Source of the DNA: Macrostomum lignano
Lineage: Eukaryota
NCBI GenBank assembly: GCA_002269645.1
Contig: NIVC01002499.1
Span: 1-64,000 of the forward strand
Length of the DNA: 64,000 nucleotides
Direction of reading: 5' to 3'
The notes under the pieces were generated by a model that worked only from the letters and a program-made list of their open reading frames with translations, was not told the origin of the DNA and did not search any database. Within the stretch, counting starts at the first letter, position 1, and every line of letters begins with the position of its first letter. Below, in pieces: positions 34,779 through 60,374 of this stretch. The position numbers and the translations under genes are program-made.

Positions 34779-34929
34779 CTTGTGAACCAGACCTACAATT
34801 GCGATGCTGATTTTTTCGCAAAGCTATTTTAGTGGGGCGTCCCCTGAAGAGGAGGGGAGGCATTTTTTGCCTGAAAAAAATTGTACAAATGTTGCAGCTT
34901 CTTTTTACCACCAGCTTGAAAATTAAAGC

Positions 34930-37900
34930 CGAAAAGACGGTCTCTTACTGCGAAGACTCAATTTATTGCGTGCCATCTTGAGCCATTTCATTTGGACACC
35001 TGTGCAAATAGTGCTGACACCTCCTGGCATCGCGGCCAGATCACCAGGCCGCGGATGACCTCGGTTGGCTCGGACGGCCGCGCGTCGGCTGCGGCAGCAA
35101 AGCTCAGCACAGCAGGGACTCGCAGAGGACAGCGCAGCGCGCAACGCCACACTGAGCGGCAGCGCGAGCGCAACCGGCGAGGGCGACTCCGTGGCGCGGC
35201 CAGGCGCCTGTTGTCCCCAGTCGCTGTTATTTCAACTATGGATCCTCCGGGTGGCGCCGGGGACCATGAGGCCAACCTCCATCTGGTCCCAGCTGTACCA
35301 GGTGGCCGTCTCAGACTCGGCACGATGAACTGCCGAACTCTGAAGGCCCCCTGGCGTCGCACCATCCTTGTCCAGCTGGCCCACGGCCTACAGCTGGACC
35401 TCGTCTTGCTGCAGGATGTTTCTATCGTGGCTGAGCCGGGGCTCCACTCTGAGGACCTCGGAGCCGGCTGGAGCCTCCTGTACACGTCGGCAGACAACCG
35501 CGGCCGGGGCGGTGTCGGCTTGCTGATCGGACCACGCCTCCAGCAGAGCGTGCACTGCATCTCGCTGTTCCAGCGACTGATGCGGGTCGACCTGCGACTG
35601 CGCGCCTGCTGCATCCGGCTGTTCTGCGCGTATGCACCCACCGCTGCTCACCCCGAGGAGGCTCGTGCCTTCTTCGAGTTCCTGGCTGGGCAGCTCGAAG
35701 AGGTGCCAAACCGCGACACGCTGGCAGTGCTCGGAGACCTGAACGCAGTCCCGCGCAGGTCCGAGCGCTCGCCCTTTGTCGCGGGACGCGAGAACGCCAA
35801 CAGCGATGCGCTGGAGGACCTGCTTGACCGACTGGATCTGGTGTCCGCGAACACCCAGTCCCGCAAGCTTCCTGCCCGCCTGGTCACCTTTGCGGGCTGC
35901 AAGAGAAGGCGGCGGAACGCACGCGGGCGGAATGCCACGAGGAGACTGGCGGAACTCGATCATGCGCGGGTTCGCACTCGCGAGCGCTGCCGCCGCGTCA
36001 CCAACTGCGACACCATGGCTCCGCTGGCTCTCCGGTCAGACCACCGACTCCTGATCTGCAACTTGCGGCTCCGCGACCAGCTCTACCGACCGCCAAAGGA
36101 GCGGCCACGGTGCTACTATCGCGCACTGTTGGACACCCGCGTGAAGCGTCAATTCGCGGGTGTCTTCGTCGGCGCGCTTGGAGACCAGCGCGAGGCGAAG
36201 TATTCCGACATCAGCACCGCCGTTAGAGCCGCTGCAGAGCAGACGGTCCCGCTGATGCGGCCAGCGCAGAAATCGCTGCCTGTCTGGCAGAGCGACCCCA
36301 TCATCAGGCAGGCGCGGCTCAACATCGAGGCCCACAGGCGACGCTGAAGACGCATTTGAGCGCCTTTTTGACGAGCGGCAGCAGGTCGCTTTCGACGACG
36401 CCATTAGGTCCATCACTGCAGCCGGCCCCGATGTGAAGAGCCACGCAGTGTGGACGGCCGTCCGGATTCTGACGGGGCGCAAAAAGCGCGTGGCGCTGAA
36501 CCTAGCCGGCGACACCCCGGAGGAGCGCAGGAATGAATTGCGCGACTTCTTCGCCGGCATCGTGAACGCTCCCGCGTCGCCGCTGCCCGCCAGCTTTGCG
36601 CTCCCACTGGACACGCCGCTCCCAGCTGAGGAGGACTTCTGCACCAGACCAGTCACCACGGAGGACGTTGTGCTGTTCGCTCAGAAAACATCAAGCGGCA
36701 AGGCGCTCAGCTCCGACGAAGTCCCGGCCGAAGCGCTGCGGCTCCGCTGTGTGGCCTCCCAGGTCACAGGCGTCATGAACCGCGTGCTCGCCGGCGCTCC
36801 TGCGCCTACCGAGTGGACCGTCGCGCACATCGTGCCGATCCCAAAGAAGGCAGGGACAACGCGGAAAGAAGACCCCCGCGGGATCTCGCTGATGTCCTGC
36901 ACCGCAAAGCTCTTCAACCGGCTGCTGCTCGATCGTCTGCAGTCGGTGCTGGACCCGTACCTGCGGTACGAGCAGTACGGATTCCGGCCGCAACGCGGTA
37001 CAGTGACACAGATCCTCGCACTCCACCGTGTCATCGAGGAGGCGCGCATCCGCCAGTCTACGCTGATCATTGTCTTCGTTGACTTTCGAAAGGCGTTTGA
37101 CTCGGTGTTGAGAGCCGCGCTTCCCTTTGTCCTCGAGCCTACCGGGTACCCCAGCAGCTAATCGACGCTGTCATGGCGCTGTATTGCGATACTCGAGCTG
37201 CTGTGGTGACGGCGGACGGCCTGTCTGACCTGTTCGATACTTCATCAGGAGTTCTGCAGGGCGACACGCTAGCGCTGTTCCTCTTCGTGCTGCTGCTGAA
37301 CTGGGTGCTTCGGACCGCACTTCCCTCAGATAAAGACGGCTTCCTGCTGCGCAGACGCATCGGTCACCGCCACGGCGAAAAGCGCCTAAGCGTACCTAGC
37401 TACGCCGACGACCTCGCCCTCCTGTCCTCGTCCGTTGAAGGCGCCCAGCGCCAGACAGGCTGGTCGAAGTGGCATCGAGCGTCGGTCTGATCGTCAACAC
37501 GCTGAAGACCGAGCTGCTGACTGTGCCGGCCGACATCCCAGCGGACCTGACGTGCCGCGGCGCAGACGGGCAGACGACCAGGCTCGCACGCTGCCAGCGG
37601 TTCACCTACCTCGGCGGTCTGGTGCCCCACGTGGAAGAGGACCTCTGGCGGACTTGCCTTGCCGGCCTTTCGTTCGATCCGAGCCGTCCTCCAGTCCGAA
37701 GCGCTGCCCGACCGCCAGAGGGCTCGGCTGTGACAGGCGGTGGTCGAAACCGTCCTGCTATCGTGCTATACAACGCCGAGACGTGGACGCTGACGGATAC
37801 GCTAGAGCGGCAGCTGGACTCGGCGCACTCAGGGCTGCTCCGTGCAGCCTTTCGAGCTGACGAGAGCGTCGGGACCGAGGCCCAGTACGATGGGGCCAAA

Positions 37901-43062: not shown

Positions 43063-46000
43063 ATGGCGGACATCAACCATGCCAGAGTGCAGCTAACTCA
43101 TCACGTGAGCAGCCTCTTCTCACAAATGTAAGTTCGCTATCAGTGCTGGCTGCTCTATTTTAGATCAAGTAGTACCTGATGCAACCCCCGTGCTTGCATT
43201 GCAGACTGGGCGCGGACAAGCCCAGCGTGGAACTGGACACCTACATTGACCTGCTGGAGCGCTCCGTCCGCCCCAACACGCAATCGCTGTTGGTGAGTCT
43301 TAGAGAGTTCTGAATTTGATGAGGTCTCGAGTTCGAATCCTGACAACCAGGAAATCTTCCAGGCCGACGCTCACCGGGCCAAGCGGATCATCAGCGACAA
43401 CAACCCGCATGCCGAGGAGTTCAACCGCAAATATGAGGAGCTTAAGATTAAAAAGTAAGCTGGTGCTGCTCTGCTGGTGCCTGCTCGCCCAGATCGTTAG
43501 ACTGGACTACCACCCTCCCAGATCCTCAGCTGCTGGGGCCACCGCCATCCCTCCCAGAGTCCCAGATCCTCAGCTGCTGGGGCCACCGCCATCCCTCCCA
43601 GAGTCCCAGATCCTCAGCTGCTGGGGCCACCGCCATCCCTCCCAGAGTCCCAGATCCTCAGCTGCTGGGGCCACCGCCATCTCTCCCAGAGTCCCAGATC
43701 CTCAGTTGCTGGGGCCACCGCCATCCCTCCCAGAGTCCCAGATCCTCAGTTGCTGGGGCCACCGCCATCCCTCCCAGAGTCCCAGATCCTCAGTTGCTGG
43801 GGCCACCGCCATCCCTCCCAGAGTCCCAGATCCTCAGTTGTTGGGGCCACCGCCATCCCTGCCAGAGTCCCAGATCCTCAGTTGTTGGGGCCACCGCCAT
43901 TCCTGCCAGTGTCCCAGATCCTCAGTTGTTGGGGCCACCGCCATCCCTCCCAGAGTCCCAGATCCTCAGTTGTTGGGGCCACCGCCATCCCTGCCAGAGT
44001 CCCAGATCCTCAGTTGTTGGGGCCACCGCCATCCCTGCCAGAGTCCCAGATTCTCAGTTGTTGGGGCCACCGCCATCCCTACCAGAGTCCCAGATCCTCA
44101 GTTGCTGGGGCCACCGCCATCCCTCCAGAGTCCCAGATCCTCAGTTGCTGGGGCCACCGCCATCCCTCCAGAGTCCCAGATCCTCAGTTGCTGACGATAA
44201 TCTGTACACCCTGTTCGAGTGCATATGTGCGTACGCATCCTTGTGCGTGTTTAGGAATCAGTGAAATGGGCAAGGACTGCTTGCTTCTACGAGTGCCCAA
44301 AGCCTCCCCATACCAGTTACTCCCAGACCCTCAGTCGGGGTCTCCTGCTATCAGAGTCCCAAGATTGTGAAACTAGCCACGGCAGTCCAAGAGTCGGGTT
44401 GAAGCGCGATTGCCCGTACGGTCAGTTGCACCTTGCCGACTCTCTTGTTTCTGCAAGCTGCGCCTCCCGCTCCCCGCCTCCCCAGCGTGAAGGAGCTGGA
44501 CCCGTTCGTAGATTTGCTGTCCCGCATCAAGCGCGACCCGGCCACTCAGCGCACTTTGGAGGCCATCGCCGGTCCCGTTCAGCTGCCGACTTCCGCTGGC
44601 AGCGCCGCCGCGCAGCCAAGGCGCCCCCAGACAGCCGTCGGCGCGCCAGCCGGCTCCACATCCCGGCTGAACGTGGCGGCGCTGTCCTCCCACATGAACG
44701 CCGAAGCGCGTCAGCGGCCGACGGACTCTTCGCTGCCTTCGTCAGTGGCCGGCCCGTTGCGCCAGAAGACGCCGGCCTCGGAGCCCGCCGAAGTGCCGTG
44801 GCAGCCGGACTGGCTCTACGAGCGGCCGTTCTTGTCCAGCGACTTTGTCCTGGACGATCCGCCGCGCCGCCTGACTCCCAGCATCGGGGTCTACCCGGTC
44901 GAGGCGCAGGAGCAGCTGATCATTCAGGACGTGCTCTCCCTGCTTAGCGGAGTTGAGGTAGCTGGGCTGGTCTGAGCCATGGAGTTCCAAGCCTAGGGTC
45001 TGGAGGGGGACTGCTGTCCAAGCAGCCATGGAGTTCTAGGCCTAAGGTCTGGAGGGGAACTGCTGTCCAAGCAGCCATGGAGTTCCAAGCCTAGGGTCTG
45101 GAGGGGAACTGCTGTCCAAGCAGCCATGGAGTTCTAGGCCTAGGGTCTGGAGGGGGACTGCTGTCCAAGCAGCCATGGAGTTCTAGGCCTAGGGTCTGGA
45201 GGGGACTGCTGTCCAAGCAGCCATAAAGTTCTAGGCCTAGGGTCTGGAGGGGAACTGCTGTCCAAGCAGCCATGAAGTTCTAGGCCTAGGGTCTGTCCGG
45301 TCTGGAGTAGAACTGCTGTCCAAGCAATCAGAGTTCAATTAACGAAGGCGTGAAAGTCCTGTGTTTCGCGAGCTGCAAGCTGAACGCCGCCACCCCTCCC
45401 CATCCAGGGCTCCTTCGTTGTGCCTCGTCCGCTCGCCTCTCGGGCCGACAGGCGCGGCTTCGATGTCGACAACAGCCTGGACGCCACCCGGCTGGAGATG
45501 CTCGGCCAGCTGCTGCCCGTCTGCAGCCACCGCTCCGATGTGACCCGCTTCGCCGAGGACAAAGCTGCCTATGAGTACGGCATGGTGAACCAGGCCCTCA
45601 GCGGCTCCATCACTGCCCTGCTCAGGTGAGGCTGGTGCGGGTCCGTGTGCCAATTTGGGCTGGAAATGGAAAATTTTTTATGTCTATCGAGTGGCACATT
45701 TTGGGATTTCCATCTAATAGGAGATTTGTGGATTCCATCTCAGGGGAGATTTGGGGATTCTATTTCGGGGGAGATTTGGGGATTCTATCTCAGGGGAGAT
45801 TTGGGGATTCTATTTCGGGGAGATTTGGGGATTCTATCTCAGGGGAGATTTGGAGATTCCATCTCCTGGGAGATTTAGGGATTCTATCTCAGGGGACGAG
45901 AGGAGATTTGGGAATTAAATCTCATGGAAGATTTAGGGATTCTTTCTTAGGGAGGATTTTGGGATTCTATCTTCGGGGAGATTTGGAGATTCTATCTCAA

Positions 46001-48952
46001 GGGAAGAGGGCAGGTTTGGGAATTCAATCTCATGGGAGATTTTGGTATTCCATCTTTGGTGAGATTTAGGGATTCTATCTCAGGGGACGAGGGGAGATTT
46101 TGGATTTCATCTCTGGGGAGATTTGGATTCTATCTCAGGGGAAATTTTGGGGTTCTATCTCAGCCTCTCAGGGTAGATTTAGGGATTCTATCTCAGGGGA
46201 CGAGGGGAGATTTTGGATTTCATCTCTGGGGAGATTTGGATTCTATCTCGGGGAGATTTGGAAATTCTATCTCAGGGGAAATTTTGGGGTTCTATCTCAG
46301 CCTCTCGGGGGAGATTTGGGGATTCTATCTCAGGGGAGATTTGGGGATTCTATCTCGGGGGAGATTTGGGGATTCTATCTCAGCGGAGATTTGGGGGCTC
46401 CATCTCAGGGGAGATTTGGGAATTGCAATGTAAAAAGAGGAGATTCTTAGGGCTTTAATCTTGAGAGCATTCACAGCCTCAGATTGCTAAACAAAGGGCT
46501 CCACTAACCTGTCCATGCCACCTCCCTGCAGGGATCTCGGCGTCCTTGTCTGCCAGCTGGAGCACCAGCAGCGGATCGGGCAGCTGCGGCTGCACCGGCT
46601 GCACTGCTGCCTGCAGGAGCCGGCCCGCGTACTGGAGACCCTGGCCGAGATCGCACACGACGTCAACCAGGGAGAGTGCCTGGGCGGTTCCGTGCTCTCG
46701 CTGCTGCACGACAAAGCCTGCGCCTCGGCCGGCGACCCGAAGCGGCACCGCCTGCTGCTGCACCTGACAAAGGCGGCCAGTCGGCCCTTCTTCGACATGC
46801 TGCAGACCTGGGTCTACCGGGGCCGCGTGCTCGACCCCTACTCCGAGTTCATGGTCACCGAGAACACCGCCACGTCTAAGGAGGTGCTCACCAGAGAGTA
46901 CATCAAGTGCGTGCTCGACTGGATTGTTTTGACTTGCTGAAGCATTAGGTATCATGTGTCAGCATCTTCAGCCGGGCTGCTGGTAGCTGGTGGCTGCTGA
47001 AGACTCGCTCACGCGGTCATCGAATCACACAGCTTATGCACGAAGCCAGTATTTGATGTACAGATTTGTACAGTACGAAACCTGTGTGATCAAGCGAATC
47101 GCGCTGTTCTATGGCTGTGTGAACGAGCCTTGAGACAGGCAGGCATGCAGACTAAGCACTGTCTATCTTATTGTGACTGTCCATCTCGGACAGACAGACA
47201 GACAGACCTGCAAGCACTAAGACAGAAACACGCAGACACTAAGACAGACAGGCAGACACTAAGGCAGACACTAAGGCAGACACTTAGACAGACCAGGCAC
47301 TAAGACAGACAGCGTCCAAGCAGTAGAAATGACAGTAGAATGCATAACATACTGCCTACACAAGTAGCGAGGGCCAATCATTTACGCTAAAACCGAGTAG
47401 TATTTCGCTACCAGTAGTTCGCGTCCTGAACCCAGGCTGGCAAGCAGACACCCCCCGAACACATTCCACAGCGACTACTGGGAGAATCGCTACCAGCTGT
47501 GCAGCCAGCGGGTGCCCAGCTTCCTGTGGCCGATGGCGGAGAAGGTGCTGAGCACGGGAAAATACCTCAACGTGGTGGCGCAGTGCGGCGAGGCGCTGCT
47601 GGACTATCCGGCCGAGGAGCTGGTCTACGCCTACGAGGGCGGGCGCTACGTTGAGCAGCTGGAGAGCGCCCACGCCAAGGCCGCCGCCCTGCTCATGCGG
47701 CTGCTGCGTGAGAAGGGCCTGCGCGACCTTCTGTGCTCGTTGAAGCGGTTCTTCCTGCTGGACCAGAGCGACTTCCTTGTGCACTTCATGGACCTCGCTG
47801 ACTCCGAGATGCGCCGCGAGGCCGGCCGGGTCTCCCTCAACCGGCTGGAGTCGCTGCTGGAGACAGCGGTGCGGACCAGCGCTGCCGGTCCCGATCCCAA
47901 CCGGGACCGCCTGCGGGTGGCGCTGCTGCCCCACGACCTCATCGGCCAGATGCTGGCGCTGGTCAGCCTGCGAGAGGCCGCCCCCGATGCCACCGCCGCT
48001 GCTCGGCTCACCGCCCTTGAAGCCTTCAGCTTGGACATTGAGGTCGACTTCCCGCTCAGCCTCCTCATTAACAGGCGGGCCATCACGCGCTACCAGATGC
48101 TGTTCCGCCACCTCTTCTACTGCCGGCACGTGGAGCGCCTGCTGGGCTCCGTGTGGCTGCAGCAGCACCGCAACCGGGCCAGCGTCACCTCCGCCTACGC
48201 GCTTCGCCAGCAGATGCTCACCTTTGTGCAGCACCTGGAGTACTACATGACATTTGAGGTCATTGAGCCCGCCTGGCACCGGCTGTGGACGCAGCTGGAT
48301 AAGTGAGTCTGCTTCTCTGCTTTGCGGGGCTGCCGTTAGCGTTTAGGCCATTTTCCCTGCCACAGCAGGCACACGCATACCGCATACGGGGTGTGCAGAG
48401 GCCCTGGCTAGGCATGTACAGGCTGGGCTTAGTGGGTTGGCCTTCACAGTCCGATGAGTTCCTACCAGGCCAATTTCCCTATTCTGTCTGCCTTTCTGTC
48501 TGTCTGCCTGTCTGTCTGGATGTCTGTCTGTATGTCTGTCTGCCTGTCTGTCTGCCTGTCTGTCTGTCTGTCTGTCTGTCTGCCTGTCTGTCTGCCTGTC
48601 TGTCTGTCTGTCTGTCTGTCTGTCTGGATGTCTGTCTGTCTGTATGTCTGTCTGCCTGTCTGTCTGCCTGTCTGTCTGTCTGTCTGTCTGTCTGCCTGTC
48701 TGCCTGTCTGCCTATCTGTCTGTCTGCCTGTCTGTCTGCCTGTCTGTATGTCTGCCTGTCTGCCTGTCTGCCTGTCTGTCTGTCTGTCTGCCTGTCTGTC
48801 TGCCTGTCTGTCTGTCTGCCTGTCTGTCTGCCTGTCTGTATGTCTGCCTGTCTGTCTGTCTGTATGTCTGCCTGCCTGTCTGTCTGTCTGCCTGTCTGTC
48901 TGTCTGTATGTCTGCCTGCCTGTCTGTCTGCCTGTCTGTCTGTCTGTCTGTA

Positions 48953-48987
<35 letters not shown>

Positions 48988-49000
48988 ATGTCTGTCTGCC

Positions 49001-49043
<43 letters not shown>

Positions 49044-49713
49044 ATGTCTGCCTGTCTGTCTGCCTGTCTGTATGTCTGTCTGTATGTCTGTCTGTCTGTC
49101 TGTCTGTTTTTTTCTGTATTGCCAGACCTACACAGCTAGCGATCTTTAGGTTCCAGCAGACTCGTGACTCTTGATTATTGATTATTCAGCGGATGAGCAT
49201 CCATCTTAGGCATGCGCTTTCAGTTTCCCCTGGCTCATGTGTCTTGCTTGGATTGGCCTTCATTCCCATCTTTGTCTTGTCCTGTGCCCAGAAATTCAAA
49301 CTGGTGCCCAAACAGCCAAGATTTCTAGGAAAGCAGACGGTCAGGCTCTGATTGAAGCATTTAAATTTATCAACGCTTGCAGGGTGGGCAACCTGGACGA
49401 GCTGATCGAGCGGCACTCGCACATGCTGACCTCCTGCCTGTCGGACTGCATGCTGCAGCAGCCGGACCTGCTCAAGCTGCTGTACAAACTGCTGGCCGTC
49501 TGCGTCACCTTCTGCAACTGCATCGCCAGGCACGGTGGCTCCGCTGAGTCCGCCGACCTCGCCGCCACCGTGGAGACTTTCTCGGCTAACTTCAGCGGCC
49601 TGCTCAAACAGCTGATTGAGGCCATCGCTGAGCACTGCTCGAATCAGCGTCTCAACCTGATGAACCTCATCTACAGGCTGAACTACAACTACTTCTATGT
49701 GGCTGCCAGTTAG
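43063..49713 (+). CDS. TUBGCP2: Gamma-tubulin complex component 2 (GCP2/Spc97), 8 exons
   Basis: Exons 43063-43127, 43205-43292, 43351(or 43363)-43454, 44486-44957, 45408-45625, 46532-46906, 47472-48302, 49383-49713. Conserved stretches YIDLL, KYEELK, LDPFVDLL, QEQLIIQDVL, PFFDMLQTWVYRG..DPYSEFMV, YWENRY..PSFL..KVLSTGKYLNVV, KRFFLLDQSDFLVHFMD, YQMLFRHLFYCRHVER, RLNYNYFY. Confidence 0.93.
43515..44192. repeat. 44-bp intronic minisatellite CAGATCCTCAG(C/T)TG(C/T)TGGGGCCACCGCCATCCCT(C/G)CCAGAGTCC
   Basis: About 15 copies in GCP2 intron 3. Confidence 0.95.
44975..45325. repeat. 48-49-bp intronic minisatellite
   Basis: ccatggagttctaggcctagggtctggaggggactgctgtccaagcag units in GCP2 intron 4. Confidence 0.9.
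45715..46425. repeat. Degenerate ~25-bp intronic minisatellite GGGGAGATTTGGGGATTCTATCTCA
   Basis: Fills GCP2 intron 5. Confidence 0.85.
48485..49108. repeat. Long (TCTG/CCTG/TATG)n microsatellite
   Basis: About 620 bp in GCP2 intron 7; source of the CLSV-repeat spurious ORFs. Confidence 0.97.
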
Positions 49714-50324
49714 GCTGGCCGGAGTTGAACAGTCAGCACATTGTGTAACTTTGCTCTTTTAAAAAGCAACCCATTGTCGCATGGTGCTCTAGTTTGCTCT
49801 GTTAAGTATTCCTAATTTTATATGCTTGTCTCTTATTGACATTTAGTTTAATTTATTAATGATTGACATTCTTAGTGTGTTGCCAAAATTAATAGTTCCA
49901 TATAATGTAATTTGTTTGCTTTGTGATAATAATGAGTAGTCTAAAATATTCTATCATTTCGCTTACAGCTGAACTATTTTTGTACTCTGTTCTGCCGTAA
50001 CTTTATAAAGTACATTGTGTCCGTAATCAGGGCGCGCGATTCGCTTCTCCTATTTTTGCCGGCCAATTCAGTCAGGAAATATTTGCCTTTCTGCTGCTAC
50101 TTGATTTATTCCAATTGGGCAGGCCAGATTAGCCACTCTGTACGCACACACTGTACTTTGCATCTGGGGAGCTGGCCGGTCCGCACAGCCACCCCATGCG
50201 CCCCGGCAGCGTACATTGGCAGGGCTGATTCAGCAAGGACTGTAATCCGTGGAGGGCGATCTAGCAAGTTAATGGACTGGAAAATATTTACTATCTAATC
50301 AGCCTGCCACTGTCTGGCCCCGTC

Positions 50325-50592
50325 TCAAGGACCACTAGGAGCAGAAGATCAAGGACCACTAGGAATAGAAGATCAAGGACCACTAGGAATAGAATATCAA
50401 GGACCTCTAGGAATAGAATATCAAGGACCTCTAGGAATAGAATATCAAGGACCTCTAGGAATAGAAGATCAAGGACCACTAGGAATAGAATATCAAGGAC
50501 CACTAGGAATAGAATATCAAGGACCACTAGGAACAGAATATCAAGGACCACTAGGAATAGAAGATCAAGGACCACTAGGAATAGAAGATCAA
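50325..50592. repeat. 24-bp minisatellite TCAAGGACC(A/T)CTAGGAATAGAA(G/T)A upstream of the helicase gene
   Basis: About 11 copies. Confidence 0.9.
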
Positions 50593-50828
50593 TGGCTCTT
50601 ACGAGTAAATGCAGAGCCATATGATTTGTTTTTTAAACGTTTGGAAACTGGCTTTGAAAATTGTATATTCTAGCTTTTAAAAAACGTATTTTTGGTGCTC
50701 AGAAAAGCCTGTCCCCAATAATTTTCTTGGAAATGAAGTTCAGCCCTTGCTACTCCTAATCGCACTCGGTCTTCTACTCCAAATGGTCCTTGAGCTGCTA
50801 CCAGGCAAGCTAGTTTTATAAAGCCCAC

Positions 50829-53800
50829 ATGCTGTACCGATTGCAGAATCAGGTCAACAGTAACCGCTGCGACCTGTGCGGCGTGACCTTCACGTCCGCA
50901 GTTCACCGCTCCGACCACCTGAGCGGCCGGCCGCACCAGCGGGCCGTCAGCCGGGCGCTGCATGCCGAGCCCGCTGGCGAGGCCTTCTGCTGCCTCATCT
51001 GCGACGTGGCCTGCAACTCTGAGGCCAGCCTGGCGGCCCACTGCCGCGGCCAGGCGCACCAGCGGCGGCTGAAGATGCCGGAGGCTCTCGAATACGTGAG
51101 AAATTCCGCCGAGCATGTCCGGCAGGAGGACCGCGGCGGCGGCGTTGTCTGGTACTGGTGCGACCTCTGCAACATCCACGCCACGTCCAAAAGCGACTTG
51201 GCCTCGCATTTCCAGGGCCGGGGGCACAAGAATGCCGTCGTCAGGGCTGGCGTCGGCGCTCCCTCACTGGCTTTTGACGCCTCCGAAACCAGTTCGTCGA
51301 TTGTGCTGCCTGGCAACCAGCAGCAGCAAGCCGCGTCTTCCACCCAGCCGCTGGTTCCCAACCTCGAAGCTGCCGCCGCCGCTGCTGCTTCCAATTCGAT
51401 TCCCAACCACTCGGCGCGGATCGCTGTGGCCTCGCTAACTGACGAATTCTCTCTGATGTCGGTTCACTCCGGCGCTCAAGTCAGCCAGTCGCCGCTGCCC
51501 TCACTACAGTATGCCAGCCAGACCGTGCAACCTGCCAACCAGACCGTGCAACCCGCCAGCCAGACCGTGCAACCTGCCAACCAGACCGTGCAACCCGCCA
51601 GCCAGACCGTGCAATCTGCCACCCAACCCGTGCAACCCGCCAGCCAGCCTGTGCCACCTGTCCAACAGCCGCAGCTGCACAGCGAGATCCTTGCCAGTCC
51701 CTGGTTTCACTTTGAATCGGAGGGCCGCTACCGCTGCAATCTCTGCGGCACCTTCGCCACCAGCATGAGCAACCTGGCCGACCACTGGAATGGCCGGCTA
51801 CATAAGAATAAGGCCAGGAGAGCGGCAGCTACAGCCTCACATATGTCTTCATCTGCAGCCTCCCCGTCTTCATCTGCAGCTTCTTCATCTTTATCTGCAG
51901 TGTCGCCGCAATCAGTTCCACCCCAGCAGCGGCCTGCAGACTCGGTTGCGCCGGCTGCCGCAGGTGGAGGCTCACAGAGACAAAGCGCAATTACGAGTGC
52001 ATCAACGCTGGGACTGAATTTCGACTTGAACGGCAAATGCGCCTCGCCAATCAACCTGGCTACCTGGGGCATCGATGTCAGCCGCTTATCTTCATCAGCC
52101 ACCAGCTCTGTCGGCGTTTCATCAACTGTCGCTCGTTCTCACGCCGCAGCCTCTCTTTCCACAGGCTTCAACGCTTCAGCCTCGCCTTCCGCGGGCTTCA
52201 ACGCCGCAGCATCTCCCTCCGCAGTCTCGCCCTCCGCAGGCTTCAACACTGCAGCCTCTCCCTCCGCGGGCTTCAACCCTGCAGCCTCTCCCTCCGCGGG
52301 CTTCAACACTGCAGCCTCTCCCTCCGCGGGCTTCAACGCTGCAGCCTCTCCCTCCGCGGGCTTCAACGCTGCAGCCTCTCCCTCCGCGGGCTTCAACACT
52401 GCAGGCTTCGACGCTGCAGGCTTCAACGCTGCAGCCTCTCCCTCCACTGGCTTCAACACTGCAGGCTTCAACGCTGCAACCTCGCCCTCCGCGGGCTTCA
52501 ACACTGCAGGCTTCAACACTGCAGGCTTCAACGCTGCAGCCTCTCCCTCCGCTGGCTTCAACACTGCAGGCTTCAATGCTGCAGCCTCTCCCTCCGCTGG
52601 CTTCAACGCTGCAGGCTTCAACGCTGCAGCCTCTCCCTCCGCTGGCTTCAACGCTGCAGGCTTCAACGCTGCAGCCTCGCCCTCCGCGGGCTTCAACCCC
52701 ACAGCCTCCGCCGGCTTGCCCGCCGCAGCCTCCGCAGCCTTATCCGGTTCCGCAGTTCCCCATCAAGCGGCGGGCCAGGCCCAGCCGCTAGTTGAGTCCC
52801 AGGCTAACGGCATGCTGCGCTGCACTGTGTGCAATGTGCAGTGCAACACGCCAGACCAGATGCTGAACCACAAGCAAGGCAAAAATCATCTGAAGCGGCT
52901 GCGCGTCTCGGGCATCGCTCAGCCAGCCGCAGCGACCGATCGGGCTGGGCCGGAACCGGACTTGCAGGCTGGTGAGCCCGTGTGACGCGCAAAATATGAT
53001 TATCCTCAAGAGGGACTCAAACGGTTCTCAGGTGAGGCTCAGGAGGGACTCGGATGGGACAGGTGGGACTTAAGTGGAACTTAAGATGGACTTGAGGTGG
53101 GATTCAAGAGAGTTACTGAGTACTGAGGGACTCGGGTGGGACTGAGTACACAGTGTAGGAGGGACTCGGTGGGACTGAGTACACAGTGTAGGAGGGACTC
53201 GGGTGGGACTGAGTACAAGGTGTAGGAGGGACTCGGGTGGGACTGAGTACACAGTGTAGGAGGGACTCGGGTGGGACTGAGTACAAGGTGTAGGAGGGAC
53301 TCGGGTGGGACTGAGTACACAGTGTAGGAGGGACTCGGGTGGGACTGAGTACACGGTGTAGGAGGGACTCGGGTGGGACTGAGTACAAGGTGTAGGAGGG
53401 ACTCGGTTGGGACTAAATACACAGTGTAGGAGGGACTCGGGTGGGACTGAGTACACAGTGTAGGAGGGACTCGGGTGGGACTGAGTAGGGACTCGGATGG
53501 GACTGAGTAGAGACTCGGATGGGACTGAGGGACTCAGGTGGGACTGAGTACACAGTGTAGGAGGGACTCGGGTGGGACTGAGTAGGGCTCGGGCCACCCT
53601 GTTCACCAGTTGCGCCCACACCCCTGTACCACCGCGCAGCTAGCTATCAGCCCGTTGTTCAGCTGCCTGACGGCTACTCGTTGTGCAACCTTTGCGGCAT
53701 CCGTCTCCATGGAAACAATGTGGCGGCTCACGTGGCCGGCCGCGATCATCGGCGCCGTCTGGCGGTCCGCTGTCCGGCGCCGGACCGACAGGCGCCACCG

Positions 53801-56800
53801 TGCGAGTTCGTCGCCAATCCGCGGACCGACTGGCCGATCCAGCTGAGGCCGCGCATTTACCAGCTGGAGGCGTACCGTCTCTGCTGTCGCCATGGCAACG
53901 CGCTGTGCGTGCTGCCCACCGGCACGGGAAAGACCCTGGTGGCCGCCCTGGCCATTTTGGCAGCACTGGAGGCGAATCCGCTCCGTAGCGCCGTGTTCCT
54001 GGTGGACAAGGTGCTGCTGGTGCTGCAGCAGACCGCCTTCCTGCGGGCTCAGCTGACTCAGGTCTGGGAGAACTGGGCGGTTTCCTGCTGACTGAGTGAC
54101 AGGGCTGGGCGGTTTCCTGCTGACTGAGTGACAGGGCTGGGCGGTTTCCTGCTGACTGAGTGACAGGGCTGGGCAGTTTCCCAGTGACTGAGTGACAGGG
54201 CTGGGCGGTTTCCTGCTGACTGAGTGACAGGGCTGGGCAGTTTCCCAGTGACTGAGTGACAGGGCTGGGCAGTTTCCCAGTGACTGAGTGACAGGGCTGG
54301 CCGGTTTCCTGGTGACTGAGTGACAGGGCTGGGCGGTTTCCTGGTGACTGAGTGACAGGGCTGGGCGGTCTCCTGCTGACTGAGTGACAGGGCTGGGCGG
54401 TTTCCTAGTGACAGAGTGACAGGGCTGGGCTATTTCCTAGTGACAGAGTGACAGGGCTGGGCTATTTCCTAGTGACAGAGTGACAGGGCTGGGCTATTTC
54501 CTAGTGACAGAGTGACAGGGCTGGGCCTAGTGACTGAGGGTCCCACTGCTCTCGCAGGTTCGCATGCGCCGTTTCGTCCGGCCGCTGCCTCCGCCATCGT
54601 CGCCAGCCCTGCCAACCCCGACGGTGACGCGGTCGCTGGCCGTGGCGGCGGTCTGCGGCGACCTGCACAGCCTGCCTGACGATCAGCCGCTGGCCGCAGC
54701 CGACCTGGTGGTGACCACCGCCGCTTTCTACGCCAACTGCCTTCGCACCGGGGCGCTGCGCCTGGACCAGGCCTGCCTGCTGGCCATGGACGAGGCGCAC
54801 CACTGCGACGCCCTGCACCCGTACTCGCTGCTGGCCGGCCAAGTGCTCAGCATGCCGGAGCTGGAGTCGCCTCGCTTGCTGGGATTCACCGCCTCGCCAG
54901 CCGGCCAGGTTTGAATTGTTATTGGTTGGGTCTGTGACAATTGATTGTCAGTGACAATTGACTGTCTGTGACAATTGACTGTCTGTGACAATTGACTGTC
55001 AGTGACAATTGACTGTCTGTGACAATTGACTGTCTGTGACAATTGACTGTCAGTGACAATTGACTGTCTGTGACAATTGACTGTCTGTGACAATTGACTG
55101 TCAGTGACAATTGACTGTCTGTGACTATGACTGTCTGTGACAATTGACTGTCAGTGACAATTGACAGTCAGTGACAATTGACTGTCAGTGACAATTGACT
55201 GTCTGTGACAATTGACTGTCTGTGACAATTGACTGTCTGTGACAATTGACTGTCTGTGACAATTGACAGTCAGTGACAATTGACTGTCAGTGACAATTGA
55301 CAGTCAGTGACAATTGACTGTCAGTGACAATTGACTGTCAGTGACAATTGACAGTCAGTGACAATTGACTGTCAGTGACAATTGACTGTCAGTGACAATT
55401 GACTGTTAATCAATGTCTAATTTTACTCGAAACCCTGTCTCCTATTGAGCCAAGCAGTTGTGAGAAATACCCGAACCCAAAAGCTAAGGTTATATTACTA
55501 ATAGTAGCATTCCGCAAGTTCTCACTATTTTCCTGCAGGCATCCAAATTTTTTTATTATCAAAATTCGCCCGCCCTCGCAGGCCTCACTGCCGGCCACTC
55601 AGAAGATGCTGGTCGGCCTCCTGGACAGACTGGGCGGCGCTAGACTGGCCTGGCCGAGCTCGCCGGACGCCCAGGCTCAGCTAGCCGAGTTTTCTGTCCG
55701 AGCGGGCATCTCTGGCCGACTGGTGCCGCCGCTGACGGAGGAGACGGCCGCGGTGGCCGCCCTGATCAACCACTCCGCCCTGGTGCTCACCGCCCTGCGG
55801 AAGGCTGCCGAAGCATCCGGGGCGTCCGACGCCGCCCTACTGGTGAACCAGCTGCTGAGCAATGGAGGGCTCGACTGTCCGAATCTAGCCGGCGTGCTGG
55901 ACGAGGTGGCCGAGCGGACTGCCGGCAGCCAACCGGTGCGCCTCCTGGTTGAGCAGCTGCTGAGACTAAGCGAGGTGAGCGAATAAGTGGGTGAATTGGG
56001 GCAGTGAATAATTGGGTGGGTTAGGGCAGTGAATAAGTGGGTGAATTGGGGCAGTGAATAAGTGGGTGAATTGGGGCAGTGAATAAGTGGGTGAATTGGG
56101 GCAGTGAATAAGTGGGTGAATTGGGGCAGTGAATAATTGGGGGAATTGGGGCAGCGAATAAGTGGGTGAATTGGGGCAGTGAATAAGTGGGGGAATTGGG
56201 GCAGCGAATAAGTGGGTGAGTTGTGGCAGTGAATAAGTGGGTGAATTGGGCAGTGAATAAGTGAGTGAATCGGGCAGTGAATAAGTCGGTGAATACCGCT
56301 ACCCTCGCAGCTGCGCAGCGCCCTAAGCCTGGCCATCTGCGAAGACTCCCGTGTCGCCGAGCTGGACGATGCCGTTCTGTCGTCGCTGTTGTCGCGGGAG
56401 CTGCTGGCCGAGATGCGCCAGAGCGCGGAGGCGCTTGTCGATGCGCTGCAGCTCCTGCGCGAAGGCCAGGCCGCCACTGCCGGCGCTGGCTCGGTGCTGC
56501 GCGCCCTGGCCGACGACCTGCGCGGCACCGGGGGTGCCAGACTGGCGCTGGTGATCGTGCGCGAACGCGCCACTGCGCGCCGCCTCACCGATCTGCTGAC
56601 CTCTCACTCGGCCTTTGCTGACTTCGCCGACCTCCGCCCGGCCTGCCTGATCGGGCACGGCGCCGCTGGAGACGCCGGCATGTCGGTGGCGCAGCAGCGC
56701 CGCCTGCTGTTCTCGGTGGCCAGAGGCGAGGCCAACGCGCTGGTCGCCACGCCCATCGCCTGCGAGGGCCTCGACCTGCCCCGCTGCGACCTGCTGGTGC

Positions 56801-56991
56801 TGGCCGATCCGCCTTCGCGGGTAGCCGCGCTGGTGCAGTCTCGGGGCCGGGTCCGGGTGGACGCCGGCCGCTGCCTTGTGTATTGCCGCTCCGCCGAGGA
56901 GAGACAGCGGCTGCAGGATCTGCTGGCCGGGGAGGCCAACCTGCTGCAGGCTGTTCGGCTGCTGGCCGCCAGGGAGGGAGGCGGCAGCTGA
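50829..56991 (+). CDS. RIG-I/Dicer-family DExD/H helicase with six N-terminal JAZ/matrin-type zinc fingers (~1339 aa, 5 exons)
   Basis: Exons 50829-52971, 53610-54061, 54558-54908, 55582-55974, 56311-56991; phases 1,0,0,0; 4020 nt. Six C-x2-C..H-x2-G-x2-H fingers. Helicase motifs PRIYQLE, LPTGTGKT, VFLVDKVLLVLQQ, DEAHH..HPY, LGFTASP, VIVRER..A, LIGHG..MS..QQ, LVATPIACEGLDLPRC, QSRGRVR. Confidence 0.88.
53045..53585. repeat. 34-bp intronic minisatellite GGGACTGAGTACACAGTGTAGGAGGGACTCGGGT
   Basis: Helicase gene intron 1. Confidence 0.9.
54075..54530. repeat. 32-bp intronic minisatellite CTGACTGAGTGACAGGGCTGGGCGGTTTCCTG
   Basis: Helicase gene intron 2; starts just after the donor site. Confidence 0.92.
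54932..55406. repeat. 17-bp intronic minisatellite GTGACAATTGAC(T/A)GTC(A/T)
   Basis: About 28 copies in helicase gene intron 3. Confidence 0.95.
55975..56295. repeat. 25-bp intronic minisatellite GGGCAGTGAATAAGTGGGTGAATTG
   Basis: Helicase gene intron 4. Confidence 0.92.
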
Positions 56992-57074
56992 ACTGGGGCC
57001 GCCAGCCTCTGCACCCTGACTTGCCACCCCATTGACTAGTGAGCTTCCCATGGAGATCTCAATCTAGGTGTATT

Positions 57075-57680
57075 CAGATGCCAGTCTATGGGCGGGGGGG
57101 GGGAGATTCCGGTGCCAGTCTATGGGGGGGGAGATTCCGGTGCCAGTCTATGAGAGGGAGATTCCGGTTCCAGGCTATGGGGAGATTCCGGTGCTGTCAC
57201 TCTATGGGGGAGATTCCGGTGCCGCCAATCTATGAGATGGGGGCAGATTCCGGTGCCAGGCTATGGGGGAGATTCCGGTGCCAGGCTATGGGGGAGATTC
57301 CGGTGCCAGGCTATGGGGGAGATTCCGGTGCCAGGCTATGGGGGAGATTCCGGTGCCAGGCTATGGGGGAGATTCCGGTGCTGTCACTCTATGGGGGAGA
57401 TTCCGGTGCCAGGCTATGGGGGAGATTCCGGTGCCAGGCTATGGGGGAGATTCCGGTGCCAGGCTATGGGGGAGATTCCGGTGCCAGGCTATGGGGGAGA
57501 TTCCGGTGCCAGGCTATGGGGGAGATTCCGGTGCCAGGCTATGGGGGAGATTCCGGTGCCAGGCTATGGGGGAGATTCCGGTGCCAGGCTATGGGGGAGA
57601 TTCCGGTGCCGCCAATCTATGAGATGGGGGCAGATCCCAGTGCCGCCAGTCTAGGGAGGGGGAGATTCCGGTGCCGCCAG
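57075..57680. repeat. 25-bp minisatellite GGGGGAGATTCCGGTGCCAGGCTAT downstream of the helicase stop
   Basis: More than 20 copies. Confidence 0.93.
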
Positions 57681-60374
57681 TTGATGGTGGAGTATCTCGC
57701 TGCTACACAGGCGCAGCGGAGCCGGGGGGGACAGTGTGGGCAATTGCCTGCCAAATAATTTTGTAGGGGGTGGGGGGCACTGCCGTCCCAATATTTCAAT
57801 GCCATAAAAAATTATATTATATCATTTAGTCCTGATTCTCCAGTTAGGCTTCTTGTGCAATTTTTGTCACGTCAGATATGGAAGAAATCTTTTAAATGTT
57901 TTTAGATTTTCTCAGGCAGATCGTACATTACGGATTTCTTGTTGCAGCCAATACATTTTAATTGCCAATTAATTCACTGCTCACACAGCTCGTTCCCTGA
58001 CTTTGTTTTTTGCAGAGGGAATTTGAAGCACACGGAGACCTTTAGCGCTCCGGGCTGCGGTAAAATGAGTATTGGGGGTTCCCAGGCCCGGCTCTCACAC
58101 TATTGATCAACTCATGTGAGAGCCGTTGATAAATCGCTGGTTGCGGAACAGGCGCTAGACTGCTCTGGTTTGAGCACTCATTCTCCTTGACCGGCGCTCA
58201 GCGCCCTTCCCTTCTTCTCTGCTCCACTGACTGACAGCTGCTCTCTGCACGGCCCGGCCTTCTCAAATACGCATCTGCATCTCCCAGCCCGGGCGTGCAC
58301 TTTTGCAGCGCTGCGGATGCCCGGGAGATCCTTCTTTTCCCCCCCCCCCGGCTGGGAGTCTGCGGGGCTGCTGCTGACCTCCCGGCTTCCCCCGGTCTGT
58401 TTGGCACCCATTTTATCCGCGCTTATCTCATAATCCCTGCTGCTCAATCCCTACTATTTTCCCCTGGCTGGCTCGCTAATCCCCCGCATCCACCCGCTGC
58501 CCCGCAGTCCATCTTCCGCACGCAGGCCCGGCCGCCTAATTTGCCCCTCGCTCGGCCGGGCTCAGAATGCATGGGAGATCTCTTCAACTGTCTCCCCCCC
58601 CCCTGTGTCCCCGCAGCGCCTTGCAGCTCCCCAATTTGGGACGGACCGGGCGCTCTGGCGCGGGCGGGCTCAGGCAGTTCATTAGAAAGCCGCTCCCCCG
58701 GCCTCCCGATTCCAGCCCCTCGGCTCCCCTGTCTGGTTCAGCTATGCCTGCCTCCCGGTCTCACCTATGCGGCCCCGTGCGATCGGCCAGCGGCTTGGCT
58801 GGTGCGGGCCTGCCGGCTTTAATGAAGCCGCGGTAGGCAGCTGGGAGCACTGGGAGCATTTTCCCCAGCCCAGCTATTCTGCTGGGAAGGGGGCTCTTCA
58901 CTCCGGCCGGCGTGTCAATATTCCCCGCCAGCCCCGCGAGTCCGGCGCCAGTGCCAAAAAATCGATCCCCATCCGATCCAGCCTCCTCCGGCAGCTCCTT
59001 CATCATCCTCTCTATGCGCTTCTGCTTCCCACTTTCCCGGCCAGCTGCGAGTTTTGCATGGCCGGGCCAACCAGCCGGCCTGTCCGCCTGTTGCAGAGCC
59101 GCAGTGCTCAAGTCTGCACTTAAGGCGCCCCCCTGCGCGTCTCTACGCGAGTTGTTCGAGGACGGTTGATTTTCGAGTCAGCCGTCGGGTGTCATGCAAA
59201 ATGCAGCAGCGGCGGCTTCAATTTCATTGCCCAGCTGGGGGGGGGGAGTCCCGGGCAGCGGCAAGAAGCGGCTCGAGTTGCATGGGAAAAAAATCCCGCG
59301 GGAGAGCCGGCGGGGGGACGCGCGCAGTTTATTCGAAGAATTCGAGCTGCCTGGCAGCCCCCCCCCCGCCCCGTGCCGCCGCCCCCGGTCCCGCCTGCAG
59401 TCACTTATCAGCCTGCGGTCTCCGGCCTGCGCCTCACAAAGTAAGAATTGGCCCAGCGGGGCGCCCCCCCCCCTGAGCCGCTCTCAAGAGACGCCTGGTG
59501 GATGGGGGGTGAGCATCTGTTGCCAAGAGCTTGGCTGACTGCTGCCTGCCTCAATAATTCAGCAGCTCCATCCCAGCCCGGCCCAGCCTCTTTCCGCCCG
59601 CCCCGCCTGCCCAGGCTTCCGTGGGGTTCGAGGCTGGGCCCTCCGGCTGCTGCTGCTGCTGCTCGGCTCTCGAGCGCCGCCAGGTGCGGCCAGCCATGCA
59701 GTCTATTAATTGATGATGACGGAGGCTGCAGAGCTGAGTGTGGCTTTCACAGTGCCTGTGATGTCTTGTGTTCGAGAACATGAAATAGTTTTGTACGTGG
59801 CAATGTATGAATTGAATTAGTTTTAAAAATTAGTTTATTCATATAGCATCAGGTGCAGTGCGAGCCGCAGCGCATCACATTGCGTTTATAGCGTTATAGC
59901 AGCTAAGCAGGTGGTAAGGAACTCAAATAATAGCATTGTATAAAAATATGCACGACAGCGACAGGACCTGTGGCCGACTTCGGTACAGAGGCGAGGCTTG
60001 CAGAGGAAATTAGATTAAATGACATTTGGGGTGGGCACGGCAAATAAGAGGGGACTCGAATACTTTCAAAAATGTGCTCAAACATTAATTAGTATTCATC
60101 TTTGAGCGCAAAGACAATCTAAAGTGAAGTGCACGTAGCTCTGCGCACACTGAATGTACATCTATAGTGTACATGTGTGCCAATTGTGTACATAGAAAAG
60201 AATAACAAGCTCAGCTGGGGGCGACGGGCGCATCGCACTTTACTGCTACAAATTTAGCACCCTGGCGTTGGCGCTGCGTGTTTTGTTTGGGCTACAAGTC
60301 CAGCTGGCGGCCGGCTCCGAGTGGCAGCAGCGGGCTGATAGGGTGGTAGCGGCACATGAGCCCCGACGAGGAAG

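Follow-up and report, generated by a model that had tools for sequence, protein, structure and literature searches.

Positions 50829–56991 (+ strand) of the analysed window, a 64,000-nucleotide (nt) stretch of DNA from the flatworm Macrostomum lignano, code for a protein in which six zinc fingers of the JAZ type precede a DExH helicase core of the kind found in RIG-I and Dicer, and in which nothing follows the helicase. This protein is one of an old, conserved and widespread eumetazoan family, here called finger-DRA helicases, whose members, kept from corals to hemichordates and flatworms, go without a name in databases or wrongly bear that of Dicer or RIG-I. Animals recognize double-stranded RNA (dsRNA) with the RIG-I/Dicer helicase module as core engine, and its combinations with CARDs and a C-terminal domain (CTD), and with PAZ and RNase III domains, constitute the two textbook antiviral routes; here an engine of this type is joined to a different, putative dsRNA reader. 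The gene was already known as a GenBank hypothetical protein, and automatic annotators can pick up its resemblance to helicases; the novelty lies in the recognition of the finger-DRA helicases as a coherent ancient family distinct from RIG-I-like receptors (RLRs) as well as the Dicers. A preliminary description of the locus had taken the protein for a rewired RLR, with fingers in place of CARDs. It is not a local rewiring, being a member of an old eumetazoan family that in a neighbour-joining tree lies outside both the RLR and the Dicer clades.

Domain layout and gene structure

The fingers, located with regular expressions and Pfam, all lie on the + strand. Five of the six have the spacing C-x2-C-x12-H-x5-H, the sixth having x11 in the middle, and each contains H-x2-G-x2-H and is followed by a basic tail. 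Finger 1 (50868..50936, aa 14–36, CDLCGVTFTSAVHRSDHLSGRPH) was found by regular expression and by Pfam zf-met, and fingers 2 (50991..51059, aa 55–77, CLICDVACNSEASLAAHCRGQAH) and 4 (51735..51803, aa 303–325, CNLCGTFATSMSNLADHWNGRLH) likewise by regular expression and Pfam; finger 3 (51159..51227, aa 111–133, CDLCNIHATSKSDLASHFQGRGH) gives the best zf-met stretch (aa 109–133) and finger 5 (52821..52889, aa 665–687, CTVCNVQCNTPDQMLNHKQGKNH) the best zf-C2H2_jaz stretch (aa 664–687), while finger 6 (53684..53749, aa 730–751, CNLCGIRLHGNNVAAHVAGRDH) lies 35 aa before the Q motif of the helicase. With zf-met at E=5e-26 (five stretches, 90.5 bits, cut-off 21.2) and zf-C2H2_jaz at E=5e-15 (55.6 bits, cut-off 22.6), the spacing and the scores above the Pfam gathering cut-offs leave the six JAZ/zf-met-type fingers recognized earlier as real. 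In the PDB, ZFa (1zu1), a dsRNA-binding protein of Xenopus, gives the best match to the finger 2 region, a weak one (E=0.003), and close behind ZFa stand the U1-like fingers of ZMAT2, SF3A2, KIN17, and ZNF593/Bud20. JAZ/ZNF346, ZFa and Wig-1 bind A-form dsRNA stems independently of sequence, and a preference for A-form dsRNA may be expected of the present fingers as well, considering their family and ZFa as the best PDB match.

The linker between fingers 4 and 5 is a coding minisatellite (52164..52697, +; aa 446–623; units of 30 bp and 105 bp according to Tandem Repeats Finder). It is Ala/Ser/Gly-rich and comprises 22 GF(N/D) repeats spaced 5 or 10 residues apart, by which it resembles an FG-repeat-like, presumably disordered linker; its match to the Pfam model 'Decapeptide' is sub-threshold (39.5 bits, cut-off 45).

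The C-terminal 550 residues hold the Pfam helicase matches, ResIII/DEAD at aa 783–970 and Helicase_C at aa 1224–1284, both above thresholds. The motifs located are Q (RIYQ), I (PTGTGKT), Ia (FLVDK), Ic (TTAA), II (DEAHH), IIa (HPY), III (TASP), IVa (GHG), V (ATPIACEGLD), and VI (QSRGR). Compared with the PDB, the profile of the whole family matches best the resurrected ancestral Dicer helicase (2.5e-67), then plant DCL1, MDA5 and RIG-I (about 1e-51) and LGP2 (about 1e-48), with Hef (4e-46), human Dicer (about 1e-40), DRH-1 (about 1e-35) and FANCM (1.6e-31) lower; RIG-I and some MDA5 entries are matched without a break across the entire helicase (about 1e-51 to 1e-46). An AlphaFold2 (AF2) model of finger 6 with the helicase, having a predicted local distance difference test score (pLDDT) of 73.5, and 76–81 in finger 6 and its linker, aligns over 570–590 columns with RIG-I, MDA5, LGP2, the ancestral Dicer helicase, and DRH-1 (E=1e-22 to 1e-20). 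The motif set together with the profile and fold matches thus bears out the DExH core of RIG-I/Dicer kind that had been proposed, and an RNA-duplex-stimulated ATPase activity is predicted for it.

The core had also been called a complete Hel1-Hel2i-Hel2 unit. The Hel1 and Hel2 motifs are there, and in AF2 models an all-alpha insertion of ~190 aa lies between the RecA domains, exactly at the Hel2i position, with the whole-helicase fold alignments running across it; for the identity of this insertion as Hel2i no significant PDB match, convincing profile match or Pfam match speaks. A model of the insertion alone (built with 16 family sequences, pLDDT 76) matches no PDB fold better than E=0.3, hhalign gives the insertion a probability of 23% for MDA5 (and there in the wrong part of MDA5), 7% for the ancestral Dicer helicase AncD1D2, and 0.1% for Hef, and the Pfam insertion-domain model RIG-I_C (PF18119) has no match in the protein. 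Of the pincer-like end, one half at most is present: after Hel2 and its motif VI a single 29-residue helix (residues 572–600 of the AF2 model) ends the protein, and the second pincer helix is absent from the model.

A Pfam scan of the spliced protein found no CARD, RIG-I_C-RD, Dicer_dimer, PAZ, Ribonuclease_3, dsrm, or ERCC4 domain, nor a helix-hairpin-helix (HhH) or MHF-binding domain, and a regular expression for the RNase III signature gave nothing, in agreement with the first impression that CARD, CTD and RNase III were not visible. The N-terminus consists only of fingers and low-complexity sequence, without tandem CARDs, and at the other end the match to the hidden Markov model (HMM) of the family runs to the last residues, so that nothing follows the helicase.

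According to sequence reading and splice-site tests (window 50000–58000), the coding region comprises five exons and four introns, all GT..AG, and its start and stop coordinates (50829 and 56991) are exactly those given before. The joined coding sequence (CDS) is an open frame of 3990 nt translated into 1329 aa and followed by TGA, ten residues fewer than the 1339 aa of the preliminary description. A TAG stop codon lies in frame five codons 5' of the ATG, all four acceptors end in (c)gcag, the donor of exon 1 reads gtgagc after CTG, and the G+C content of third codon positions (GC3) is high in frame over the exons, which have no internal stops or frameshifts. Exon 1 (50829..52971) covers the start codon, fingers 1–5 and the low-complexity linkers (aa 1–715, up to the first base of codon 715), exon 2 (53640..54061) finger 6, a linker, the Q motif, and motifs I and Ia, and exon 3 (54558..54908) the remainder of Hel1 with motifs Ic, II, IIa, and III. 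Exon 4 (55582..55974) contains the end of Hel1 and the start of the insertion, helical in the AF2 models, and exon 5 (56311..56991) the remaining insertion, Hel2 with motifs IVa, V, and VI, the long C-terminal helix, and the TGA stop. Each of the four introns is almost wholly one private minisatellite (10–28 copies, 90–94% matches): mainly a 34-bp unit in intron 1 (52972..53639), and units of 32 bp (14 copies) in intron 2 (54062..54557), 17 bp (28 copies) in intron 3 (54909..55581), and 25 bp (12.6 copies) in intron 4 (55975..56310).

The window is 100% identical, base for base and with equal coordinates, to GenBank contig NIVC01002499.1 (GCA_002269645.1), with a gamma-tubulin-complex gene 5' of the locus in both. 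The GenBank product of the gene is PAA57349.1 ('hypothetical protein BOX15_Mlig026361g1, partial'), which agrees with the 1329-aa model in every residue from aa 7 onward save for a 30-aa gap in the coding minisatellite. Therefore, the fingers and the helicase already form one annotated CDS that shares the four junctions and the stop with the model, and their assignment to a single gene agrees also with the recurrence of the layout in at least six phyla. An exact look-up of the 1329-aa model and of the exon-1 open reading frame returned no database entry; for the model this is because the GenBank product is 5'-partial and 30 aa shorter. The GenBank CDS omits 90 nt (three 30-bp units, i.e. 30 aa) within window positions 52249–52367. 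A fifth intron was rejected as the explanation, none of the 30 equivalent placements having GT-AG, GC-AG or AT-AC ends, and the gap is most likely a difference in repeat number between the annotation transcript and the assembly (an allele or a paralogue), encoded as a join. No second copy of the gene was found within the window by tblastn. The locus is an intact gene of M. lignano, deposited in GenBank as a hypothetical protein.

The family across animals and its place among helicases

Homologues were collected by a profile search of 1.84 billion cluster representatives and by name look-up. Word-indexed searches with the M. lignano sequence gave 11 and 3 hits, swamped by its Ala-rich words, and it was a profile omitting that sequence that worked. 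About 60 cluster representatives reach at least 310 bits against the family HMM, with non-members, of other architectures, at 303 bits at most; the window protein scores 759 bits, being itself one of the six sequences in the HMM alignment. The same layout is found in the molluscs Haliotis, Lottia, Bulinus, Plakobranchus, Babylonia, Mytilus, Pinctada, Mercenaria, Mactra, Argopecten, Potamilus, Dreissena, and Octopus, in the brachiopod Lingula, the hemichordates Ptychodera and Glandiceps, the crinoid Anneissia, and the stony corals Orbicella, Montipora, and Oculina, the finger-helicase fusion thus recurring in independent genomes and transcriptomes. No vertebrate, arthropod, nematode or other ecdysozoan name occurs among the named hits of this survey, which was not exhaustive. 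The database names of the members, all automatic, are 'uncharacterized', 'dicer-like protein 1', 'Dicer homolog 3a-like', 'dicer 2-1', 'RNA helicase', and 'RIG-I-like'. No description of fingers combined with an RLR/Dicer-type helicase was found in the full-text literature (subscription literature lay beyond the search), which fits the earlier remark that the architecture is not known as a described family; a review on Z-alpha (PMC11293857) and a paper on abalone immunity (PMC11103948) do not mention it.

In nearly all members complete at both ends, 1–13 fingers occupy the N-terminal part and the helicase closes the protein, with 0–12 residues behind it. The exceptions are Dreissena polymorpha, whose extended members (P0050, P0207, P0208) continue for another 435 to 543 aa, one transcript with 183 additional aa, and a few others with 19–43 residues; the extra 477 aa of P0050 contain no Pfam domain and therefore give no clue to an effector. 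A finger ~35–45 residues before the Q motif is aligned in the members with the N-terminus present. The M. lignano protein has this JAZ-type finger right before the Q motif as well as the other traits defining the family, i.e. a FLVDKVLLVLQQ-type motif Ia, DEAHHC..HP(Y/F), LG(L/F)TASPAG, and the protein-ending helicase. Coral members have two fingers and, ahead of them, a Z-alpha domain, which is known from ADAR1 and ZBP1.

The relationships of the helicase were assessed by neighbour-joining on 69 helicase cores, with Kimura distances over 441 well-occupied columns, 100 bootstrap replicates, and two archaeal Hef proteins as the root. The finger family forms a monophyletic group (89% bootstrap), from which the flatworm sequence departs at the base on a long branch. 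Closest to this family stand a small group of stramenopile-alveolate-rhizarian (SAR) sequences from Spongospora and a brown alga (86%), then amoebozoan helicases with double-stranded RNA-binding domains (dsRBDs; 79%), among which a Polysphondylium protein represents the layout of Dictyostelium HelF, and then fusions of the helicase with an RNA-dependent RNA polymerase (RdRP). Dicers form a separate clade (92%) and so do the RLRs, represented by MDA5 and an Asterias RLR (100%), both apart from the finger family. The two Hef proteins split from everything else with 100% bootstrap, and FANCM, which is not in the tree, is the weakest of the related PDB matches, so the helicase does not group with Hef, as had been anticipated.

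DRA-type helicases joined to other modules were also seen: with 1–4 dsRBDs in the Amoebozoa Phalansterium, Cavostelium, and Polysphondylium (P0098, P0100, P0101, P0229 set), with RdRP in Pelomyxa and others (P0099, P0114, P0121 set), and with Z-alpha in the dinoflagellate Polarella (P0236). Apparently, modules that bind dsRNA or Z-RNA have been shuffled onto this helicase engine repeatedly.

Proposed role and rival explanations

The protein is probably a finger-guided dsRNA-dependent ATPase that acts in RNA silencing or antiviral surveillance through partners. The CTD of RLRs reads duplex ends. The fingers of the present protein, held apart by long and flexible linkers like those of JAZ and ZFa, would instead bind long dsRNA stems of any sequence and so tether the protein to long duplexes, not to their ends. 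The conserved finger ~35 residues before the Q motif would pass the duplex to the two RecA domains, which would hydrolyse ATP and either translocate on the duplex or clamp it. Because nuclease, CARD and polymerase domains are all missing from the protein itself, the output would come through partners, e.g. the Dicer/Argonaute machinery or a signalling adaptor, or from remodelling or masking of the dsRNA itself. The field of action is likely RNA silencing, transposon control or antiviral dsRNA surveillance, because of the tree neighbours (HelF-type proteins and RdRP fusions), the Z-alpha domain of corals, and the patchy, lineage-variable architecture. The protein may either promote or restrain these pathways: HelF, architecturally the closest studied protein, suppresses RNA interference (RNAi), its deletion in Dictyostelium rendering the cells hypersensitive to RNAi (PMC2175303).

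Several points weigh against this reading or the grounds on which it stands. The M. lignano sequence lies on a long branch and has ~30% identity to the members vs 38–44% among the others, and its motif V is atypical (ATPIACEGLD vs ATSVAEEG of the family), which could mean an altered activity. The helical insertion is a candidate Hel2i by its position. The tree was built by neighbour-joining only, with RIG-I, LGP2, DRH-1/3, FANCM, and Dictyostelium discoideum HelF not in it, and its deep nodes have 54–86% support. U1-like fingers occur also in spliceosomal and ribosome-biogenesis proteins (ZMAT2, SF3A2, ZNF593/Bud20), and a nuclear RNA-processing role is possible.

The last-named role is the main rival: a housekeeping nuclear or nucleolar helicase for RNA processing or ribonucleoprotein (RNP) remodelling, its fingers reading structured cellular RNAs such as small nuclear RNA (snRNA), ribosomal RNA (rRNA) or precursor microRNA (pre-miRNA). 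Besides the PDB neighbours of the fingers, which include KIN17 in addition to the three proteins just mentioned, the basic tail behind every finger and the FG-like repeat linker would suit it, and so would the location of comparable proteins, JAZ, ZFa and Wig-1 being mainly nuclear and the title of Popova et al. 2006 reportedly describing HelF as a nuclear protein. It is nevertheless rather unlikely: the lack of ecdysozoans and vertebrates among the named hits implies a patchy retention unusual for a housekeeping factor, the variation from 1 to 13 fingers and the gain of Z-alpha in corals are a lineage-specific flexibility more typical of defence genes, and the nearest helicase clades have RNA-silencing architectures. 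Quite improbable is a true RLR, i.e. an orthologue or derived paralogue of RIG-I, MDA5 or LGP2 that has swapped CARDs and CTD for fingers and acts in RLR-like antiviral transcriptional signalling. The top fold matches are indeed RIG-I, MDA5, and LGP2, the Mytilus and Glandiceps members have been auto-named 'RIG-I-like' by NCBI, and the Z-alpha of the coral members is an innate-immunity domain; however, the protein has neither CARD nor RIG-I_C-RD and no signalling domain, the family stands apart from MDA5 and the Asterias RLR in the tree, and the ancestral Dicer helicase outscores every RLR. Moreover, canonical RLRs exist in M. lignano beside this protein, namely PAA70142.1 and PAA48174.1; a published RLR tree (PMC8476169 supplement) uses these two, and the finger-helicase gene is not among them.

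A DNA branch-point translocase of the FANCM/Hef/Mph1 type, working in DNA repair, is very improbable. It is brought to mind by Hef (1wp9), the second-best match (4e-21) in a PDB search with the single sequence, and by the TASPG-like motif III shared with Hef, but the family profile ranks both Hef and FANCM below the ancestral Dicer helicase and the RLRs RIG-I, MDA5 and LGP2, the two archaeal Hef proteins split off in the tree, ERCC4, HhH and MHF-binding domains are lacking, and the fingers are of the RNA-duplex type. Least credible of all is an artefact, whether in the form of a spurious intron uniting two adjoining genes, one for a finger protein and one for a helicase, or of a pseudogene in decay. 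The repeat-filled intron dividing exon 1 from the helicase exons and the 'partial' GenBank entry with its non-canonical 90-nt gap could raise the suspicion, against which stand the presence of finger 6 in one exon with helicase motifs Q, I, and Ia, the same fusion in other phyla, and a frame open through all five exons with high GC3.

Going beyond the proposed ATPase of silencing or surveillance, it is conceivable, although on balance doubtful, that animals possess in the finger-DRA helicases an ancient third arm of dsRNA surveillance beside Dicers and RLRs, one reading the length or conformation of duplexes by ATP-driven translocation and recruiting effectors. If so, this arm would be at least as old as the cnidarian-bilaterian ancestor, would seemingly be absent from the vertebrates and ecdysozoans as far as the hits seen go, and would have an extensible finger array (plus Z-alpha in corals) replacing the end-recognition domains. 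Should the family serve antiviral defence, transposon control or regulation of RNAi, it would constitute a new class of invertebrate nucleic-acid sensors or regulators, present also in farmed molluscs and reef corals. It would then inform on the origin of RLRs and Dicers by domain shuffling, and correct automatic names that inflate the counts of 'Dicer' and 'RIG-I' in comparative immunology. With RNAi by soaking and transgenesis available in M. lignano, the question is directly testable in this species.

Genomic surroundings and known systems

The gene is flanked by tandem arrays, one of 24-bp units upstream (50325–50592) and one of 25-bp units downstream (57095–57681), and similar arrays occur throughout the window, the neighbouring gene included; filling introns and spacers with minisatellites looks like a genome-wide habit of M. 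lignano. The upstream neighbour, at about 43100–49700 (+), codes for a gamma-tubulin complex component (GCP), with GCP_N_terminal and GCP_C_terminal exons at 46491–46937 and 47401–48303, and its introns also hold tandem arrays, among them a (TCTG)n-type tract (48483–49107). Further away lie a retroelement resembling long interspersed nuclear elements (LINEs), at about 33200–37200 (+), with RNase H (33368–34429) and endonuclease/exonuclease/phosphatase (34992–36347) domains, adjoining open reading frames with helix-hairpin-helix (HHH_3, HHH) and Exo_endo_phos domains (3009–4943, –), and a protein-kinase exon at the left window edge (3–386, –). The composition switches sharply between blocks of 60–65% GC, made up of genes and repeat-filled introns, and blocks of 25–35% GC at 6–8 kb, 10–14 kb, 22–28 kb, and 38–42 kb.

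Among the known systems, the RLRs and their relatives (RIG-I, MDA5, LGP2, and DRH-1/3 of C. elegans) share with the M. lignano protein the DExH motif set, the whole-helicase profile matches, the best fold matches, an insertion of helices between the two RecA domains, and a helix behind Hel2. They differ in having CARDs and a zinc-binding C-terminal domain for the recognition of RNA ends, in place of which the present protein has its N-terminal finger array, and in the two helices of the pincer vs the single one here; nor does the protein fall in their clade. The Dicer helicases (Dicer-1/2, plant DCLs, and the ancestral AncD1D2, PDB 9mw6) provide the best sequence match and shared motifs including DE(A/C)HH..HPY and LGLTAS, whereas DUF283, PAZ, RNase III, and dsRBD of Dicers are all missing here, and the family lies outside their clade. 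JAZ/ZNF346, ZFa and Wig-1/ZMAT3 have the same finger type (zf-C2H2_jaz, zf-met) and long inter-finger linkers, yet consist of fingers only, while in the finger-DRA helicases the array is fused to an ATPase.

Dictyostelium HelF, a protein of 837 aa with the layout dsRBD, DEXDc, HELICc (PMC4894637), and the other amoebozoan dsRBD-helicases are alike in joining an N-terminal dsRNA-binding module to a DRA-type helicase with no catalytic effector; their module is one or more dsRBDs instead of fingers, ~100 residues follow the helicase, and they belong to Amoebozoa, not to animals. The helicase-RdRP fusions (RrpA-type of Dictyostelium, 'RNA-dependent RNA polymerase 1' of Pelomyxa) likewise combine a related DRA-type helicase with an RNA-silencing module, but in them the helicase is N-terminal, with the RdRP behind it, and there are no fingers. 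FANCM and archaeal Hef, finally, share with the present protein the broad helicase superfamily 2 (SF2) subgroup and a TASP-type motif III, and are set apart from it by their ERCC4/HhH domains and by the profile scores, Hef also by its position in the tree.

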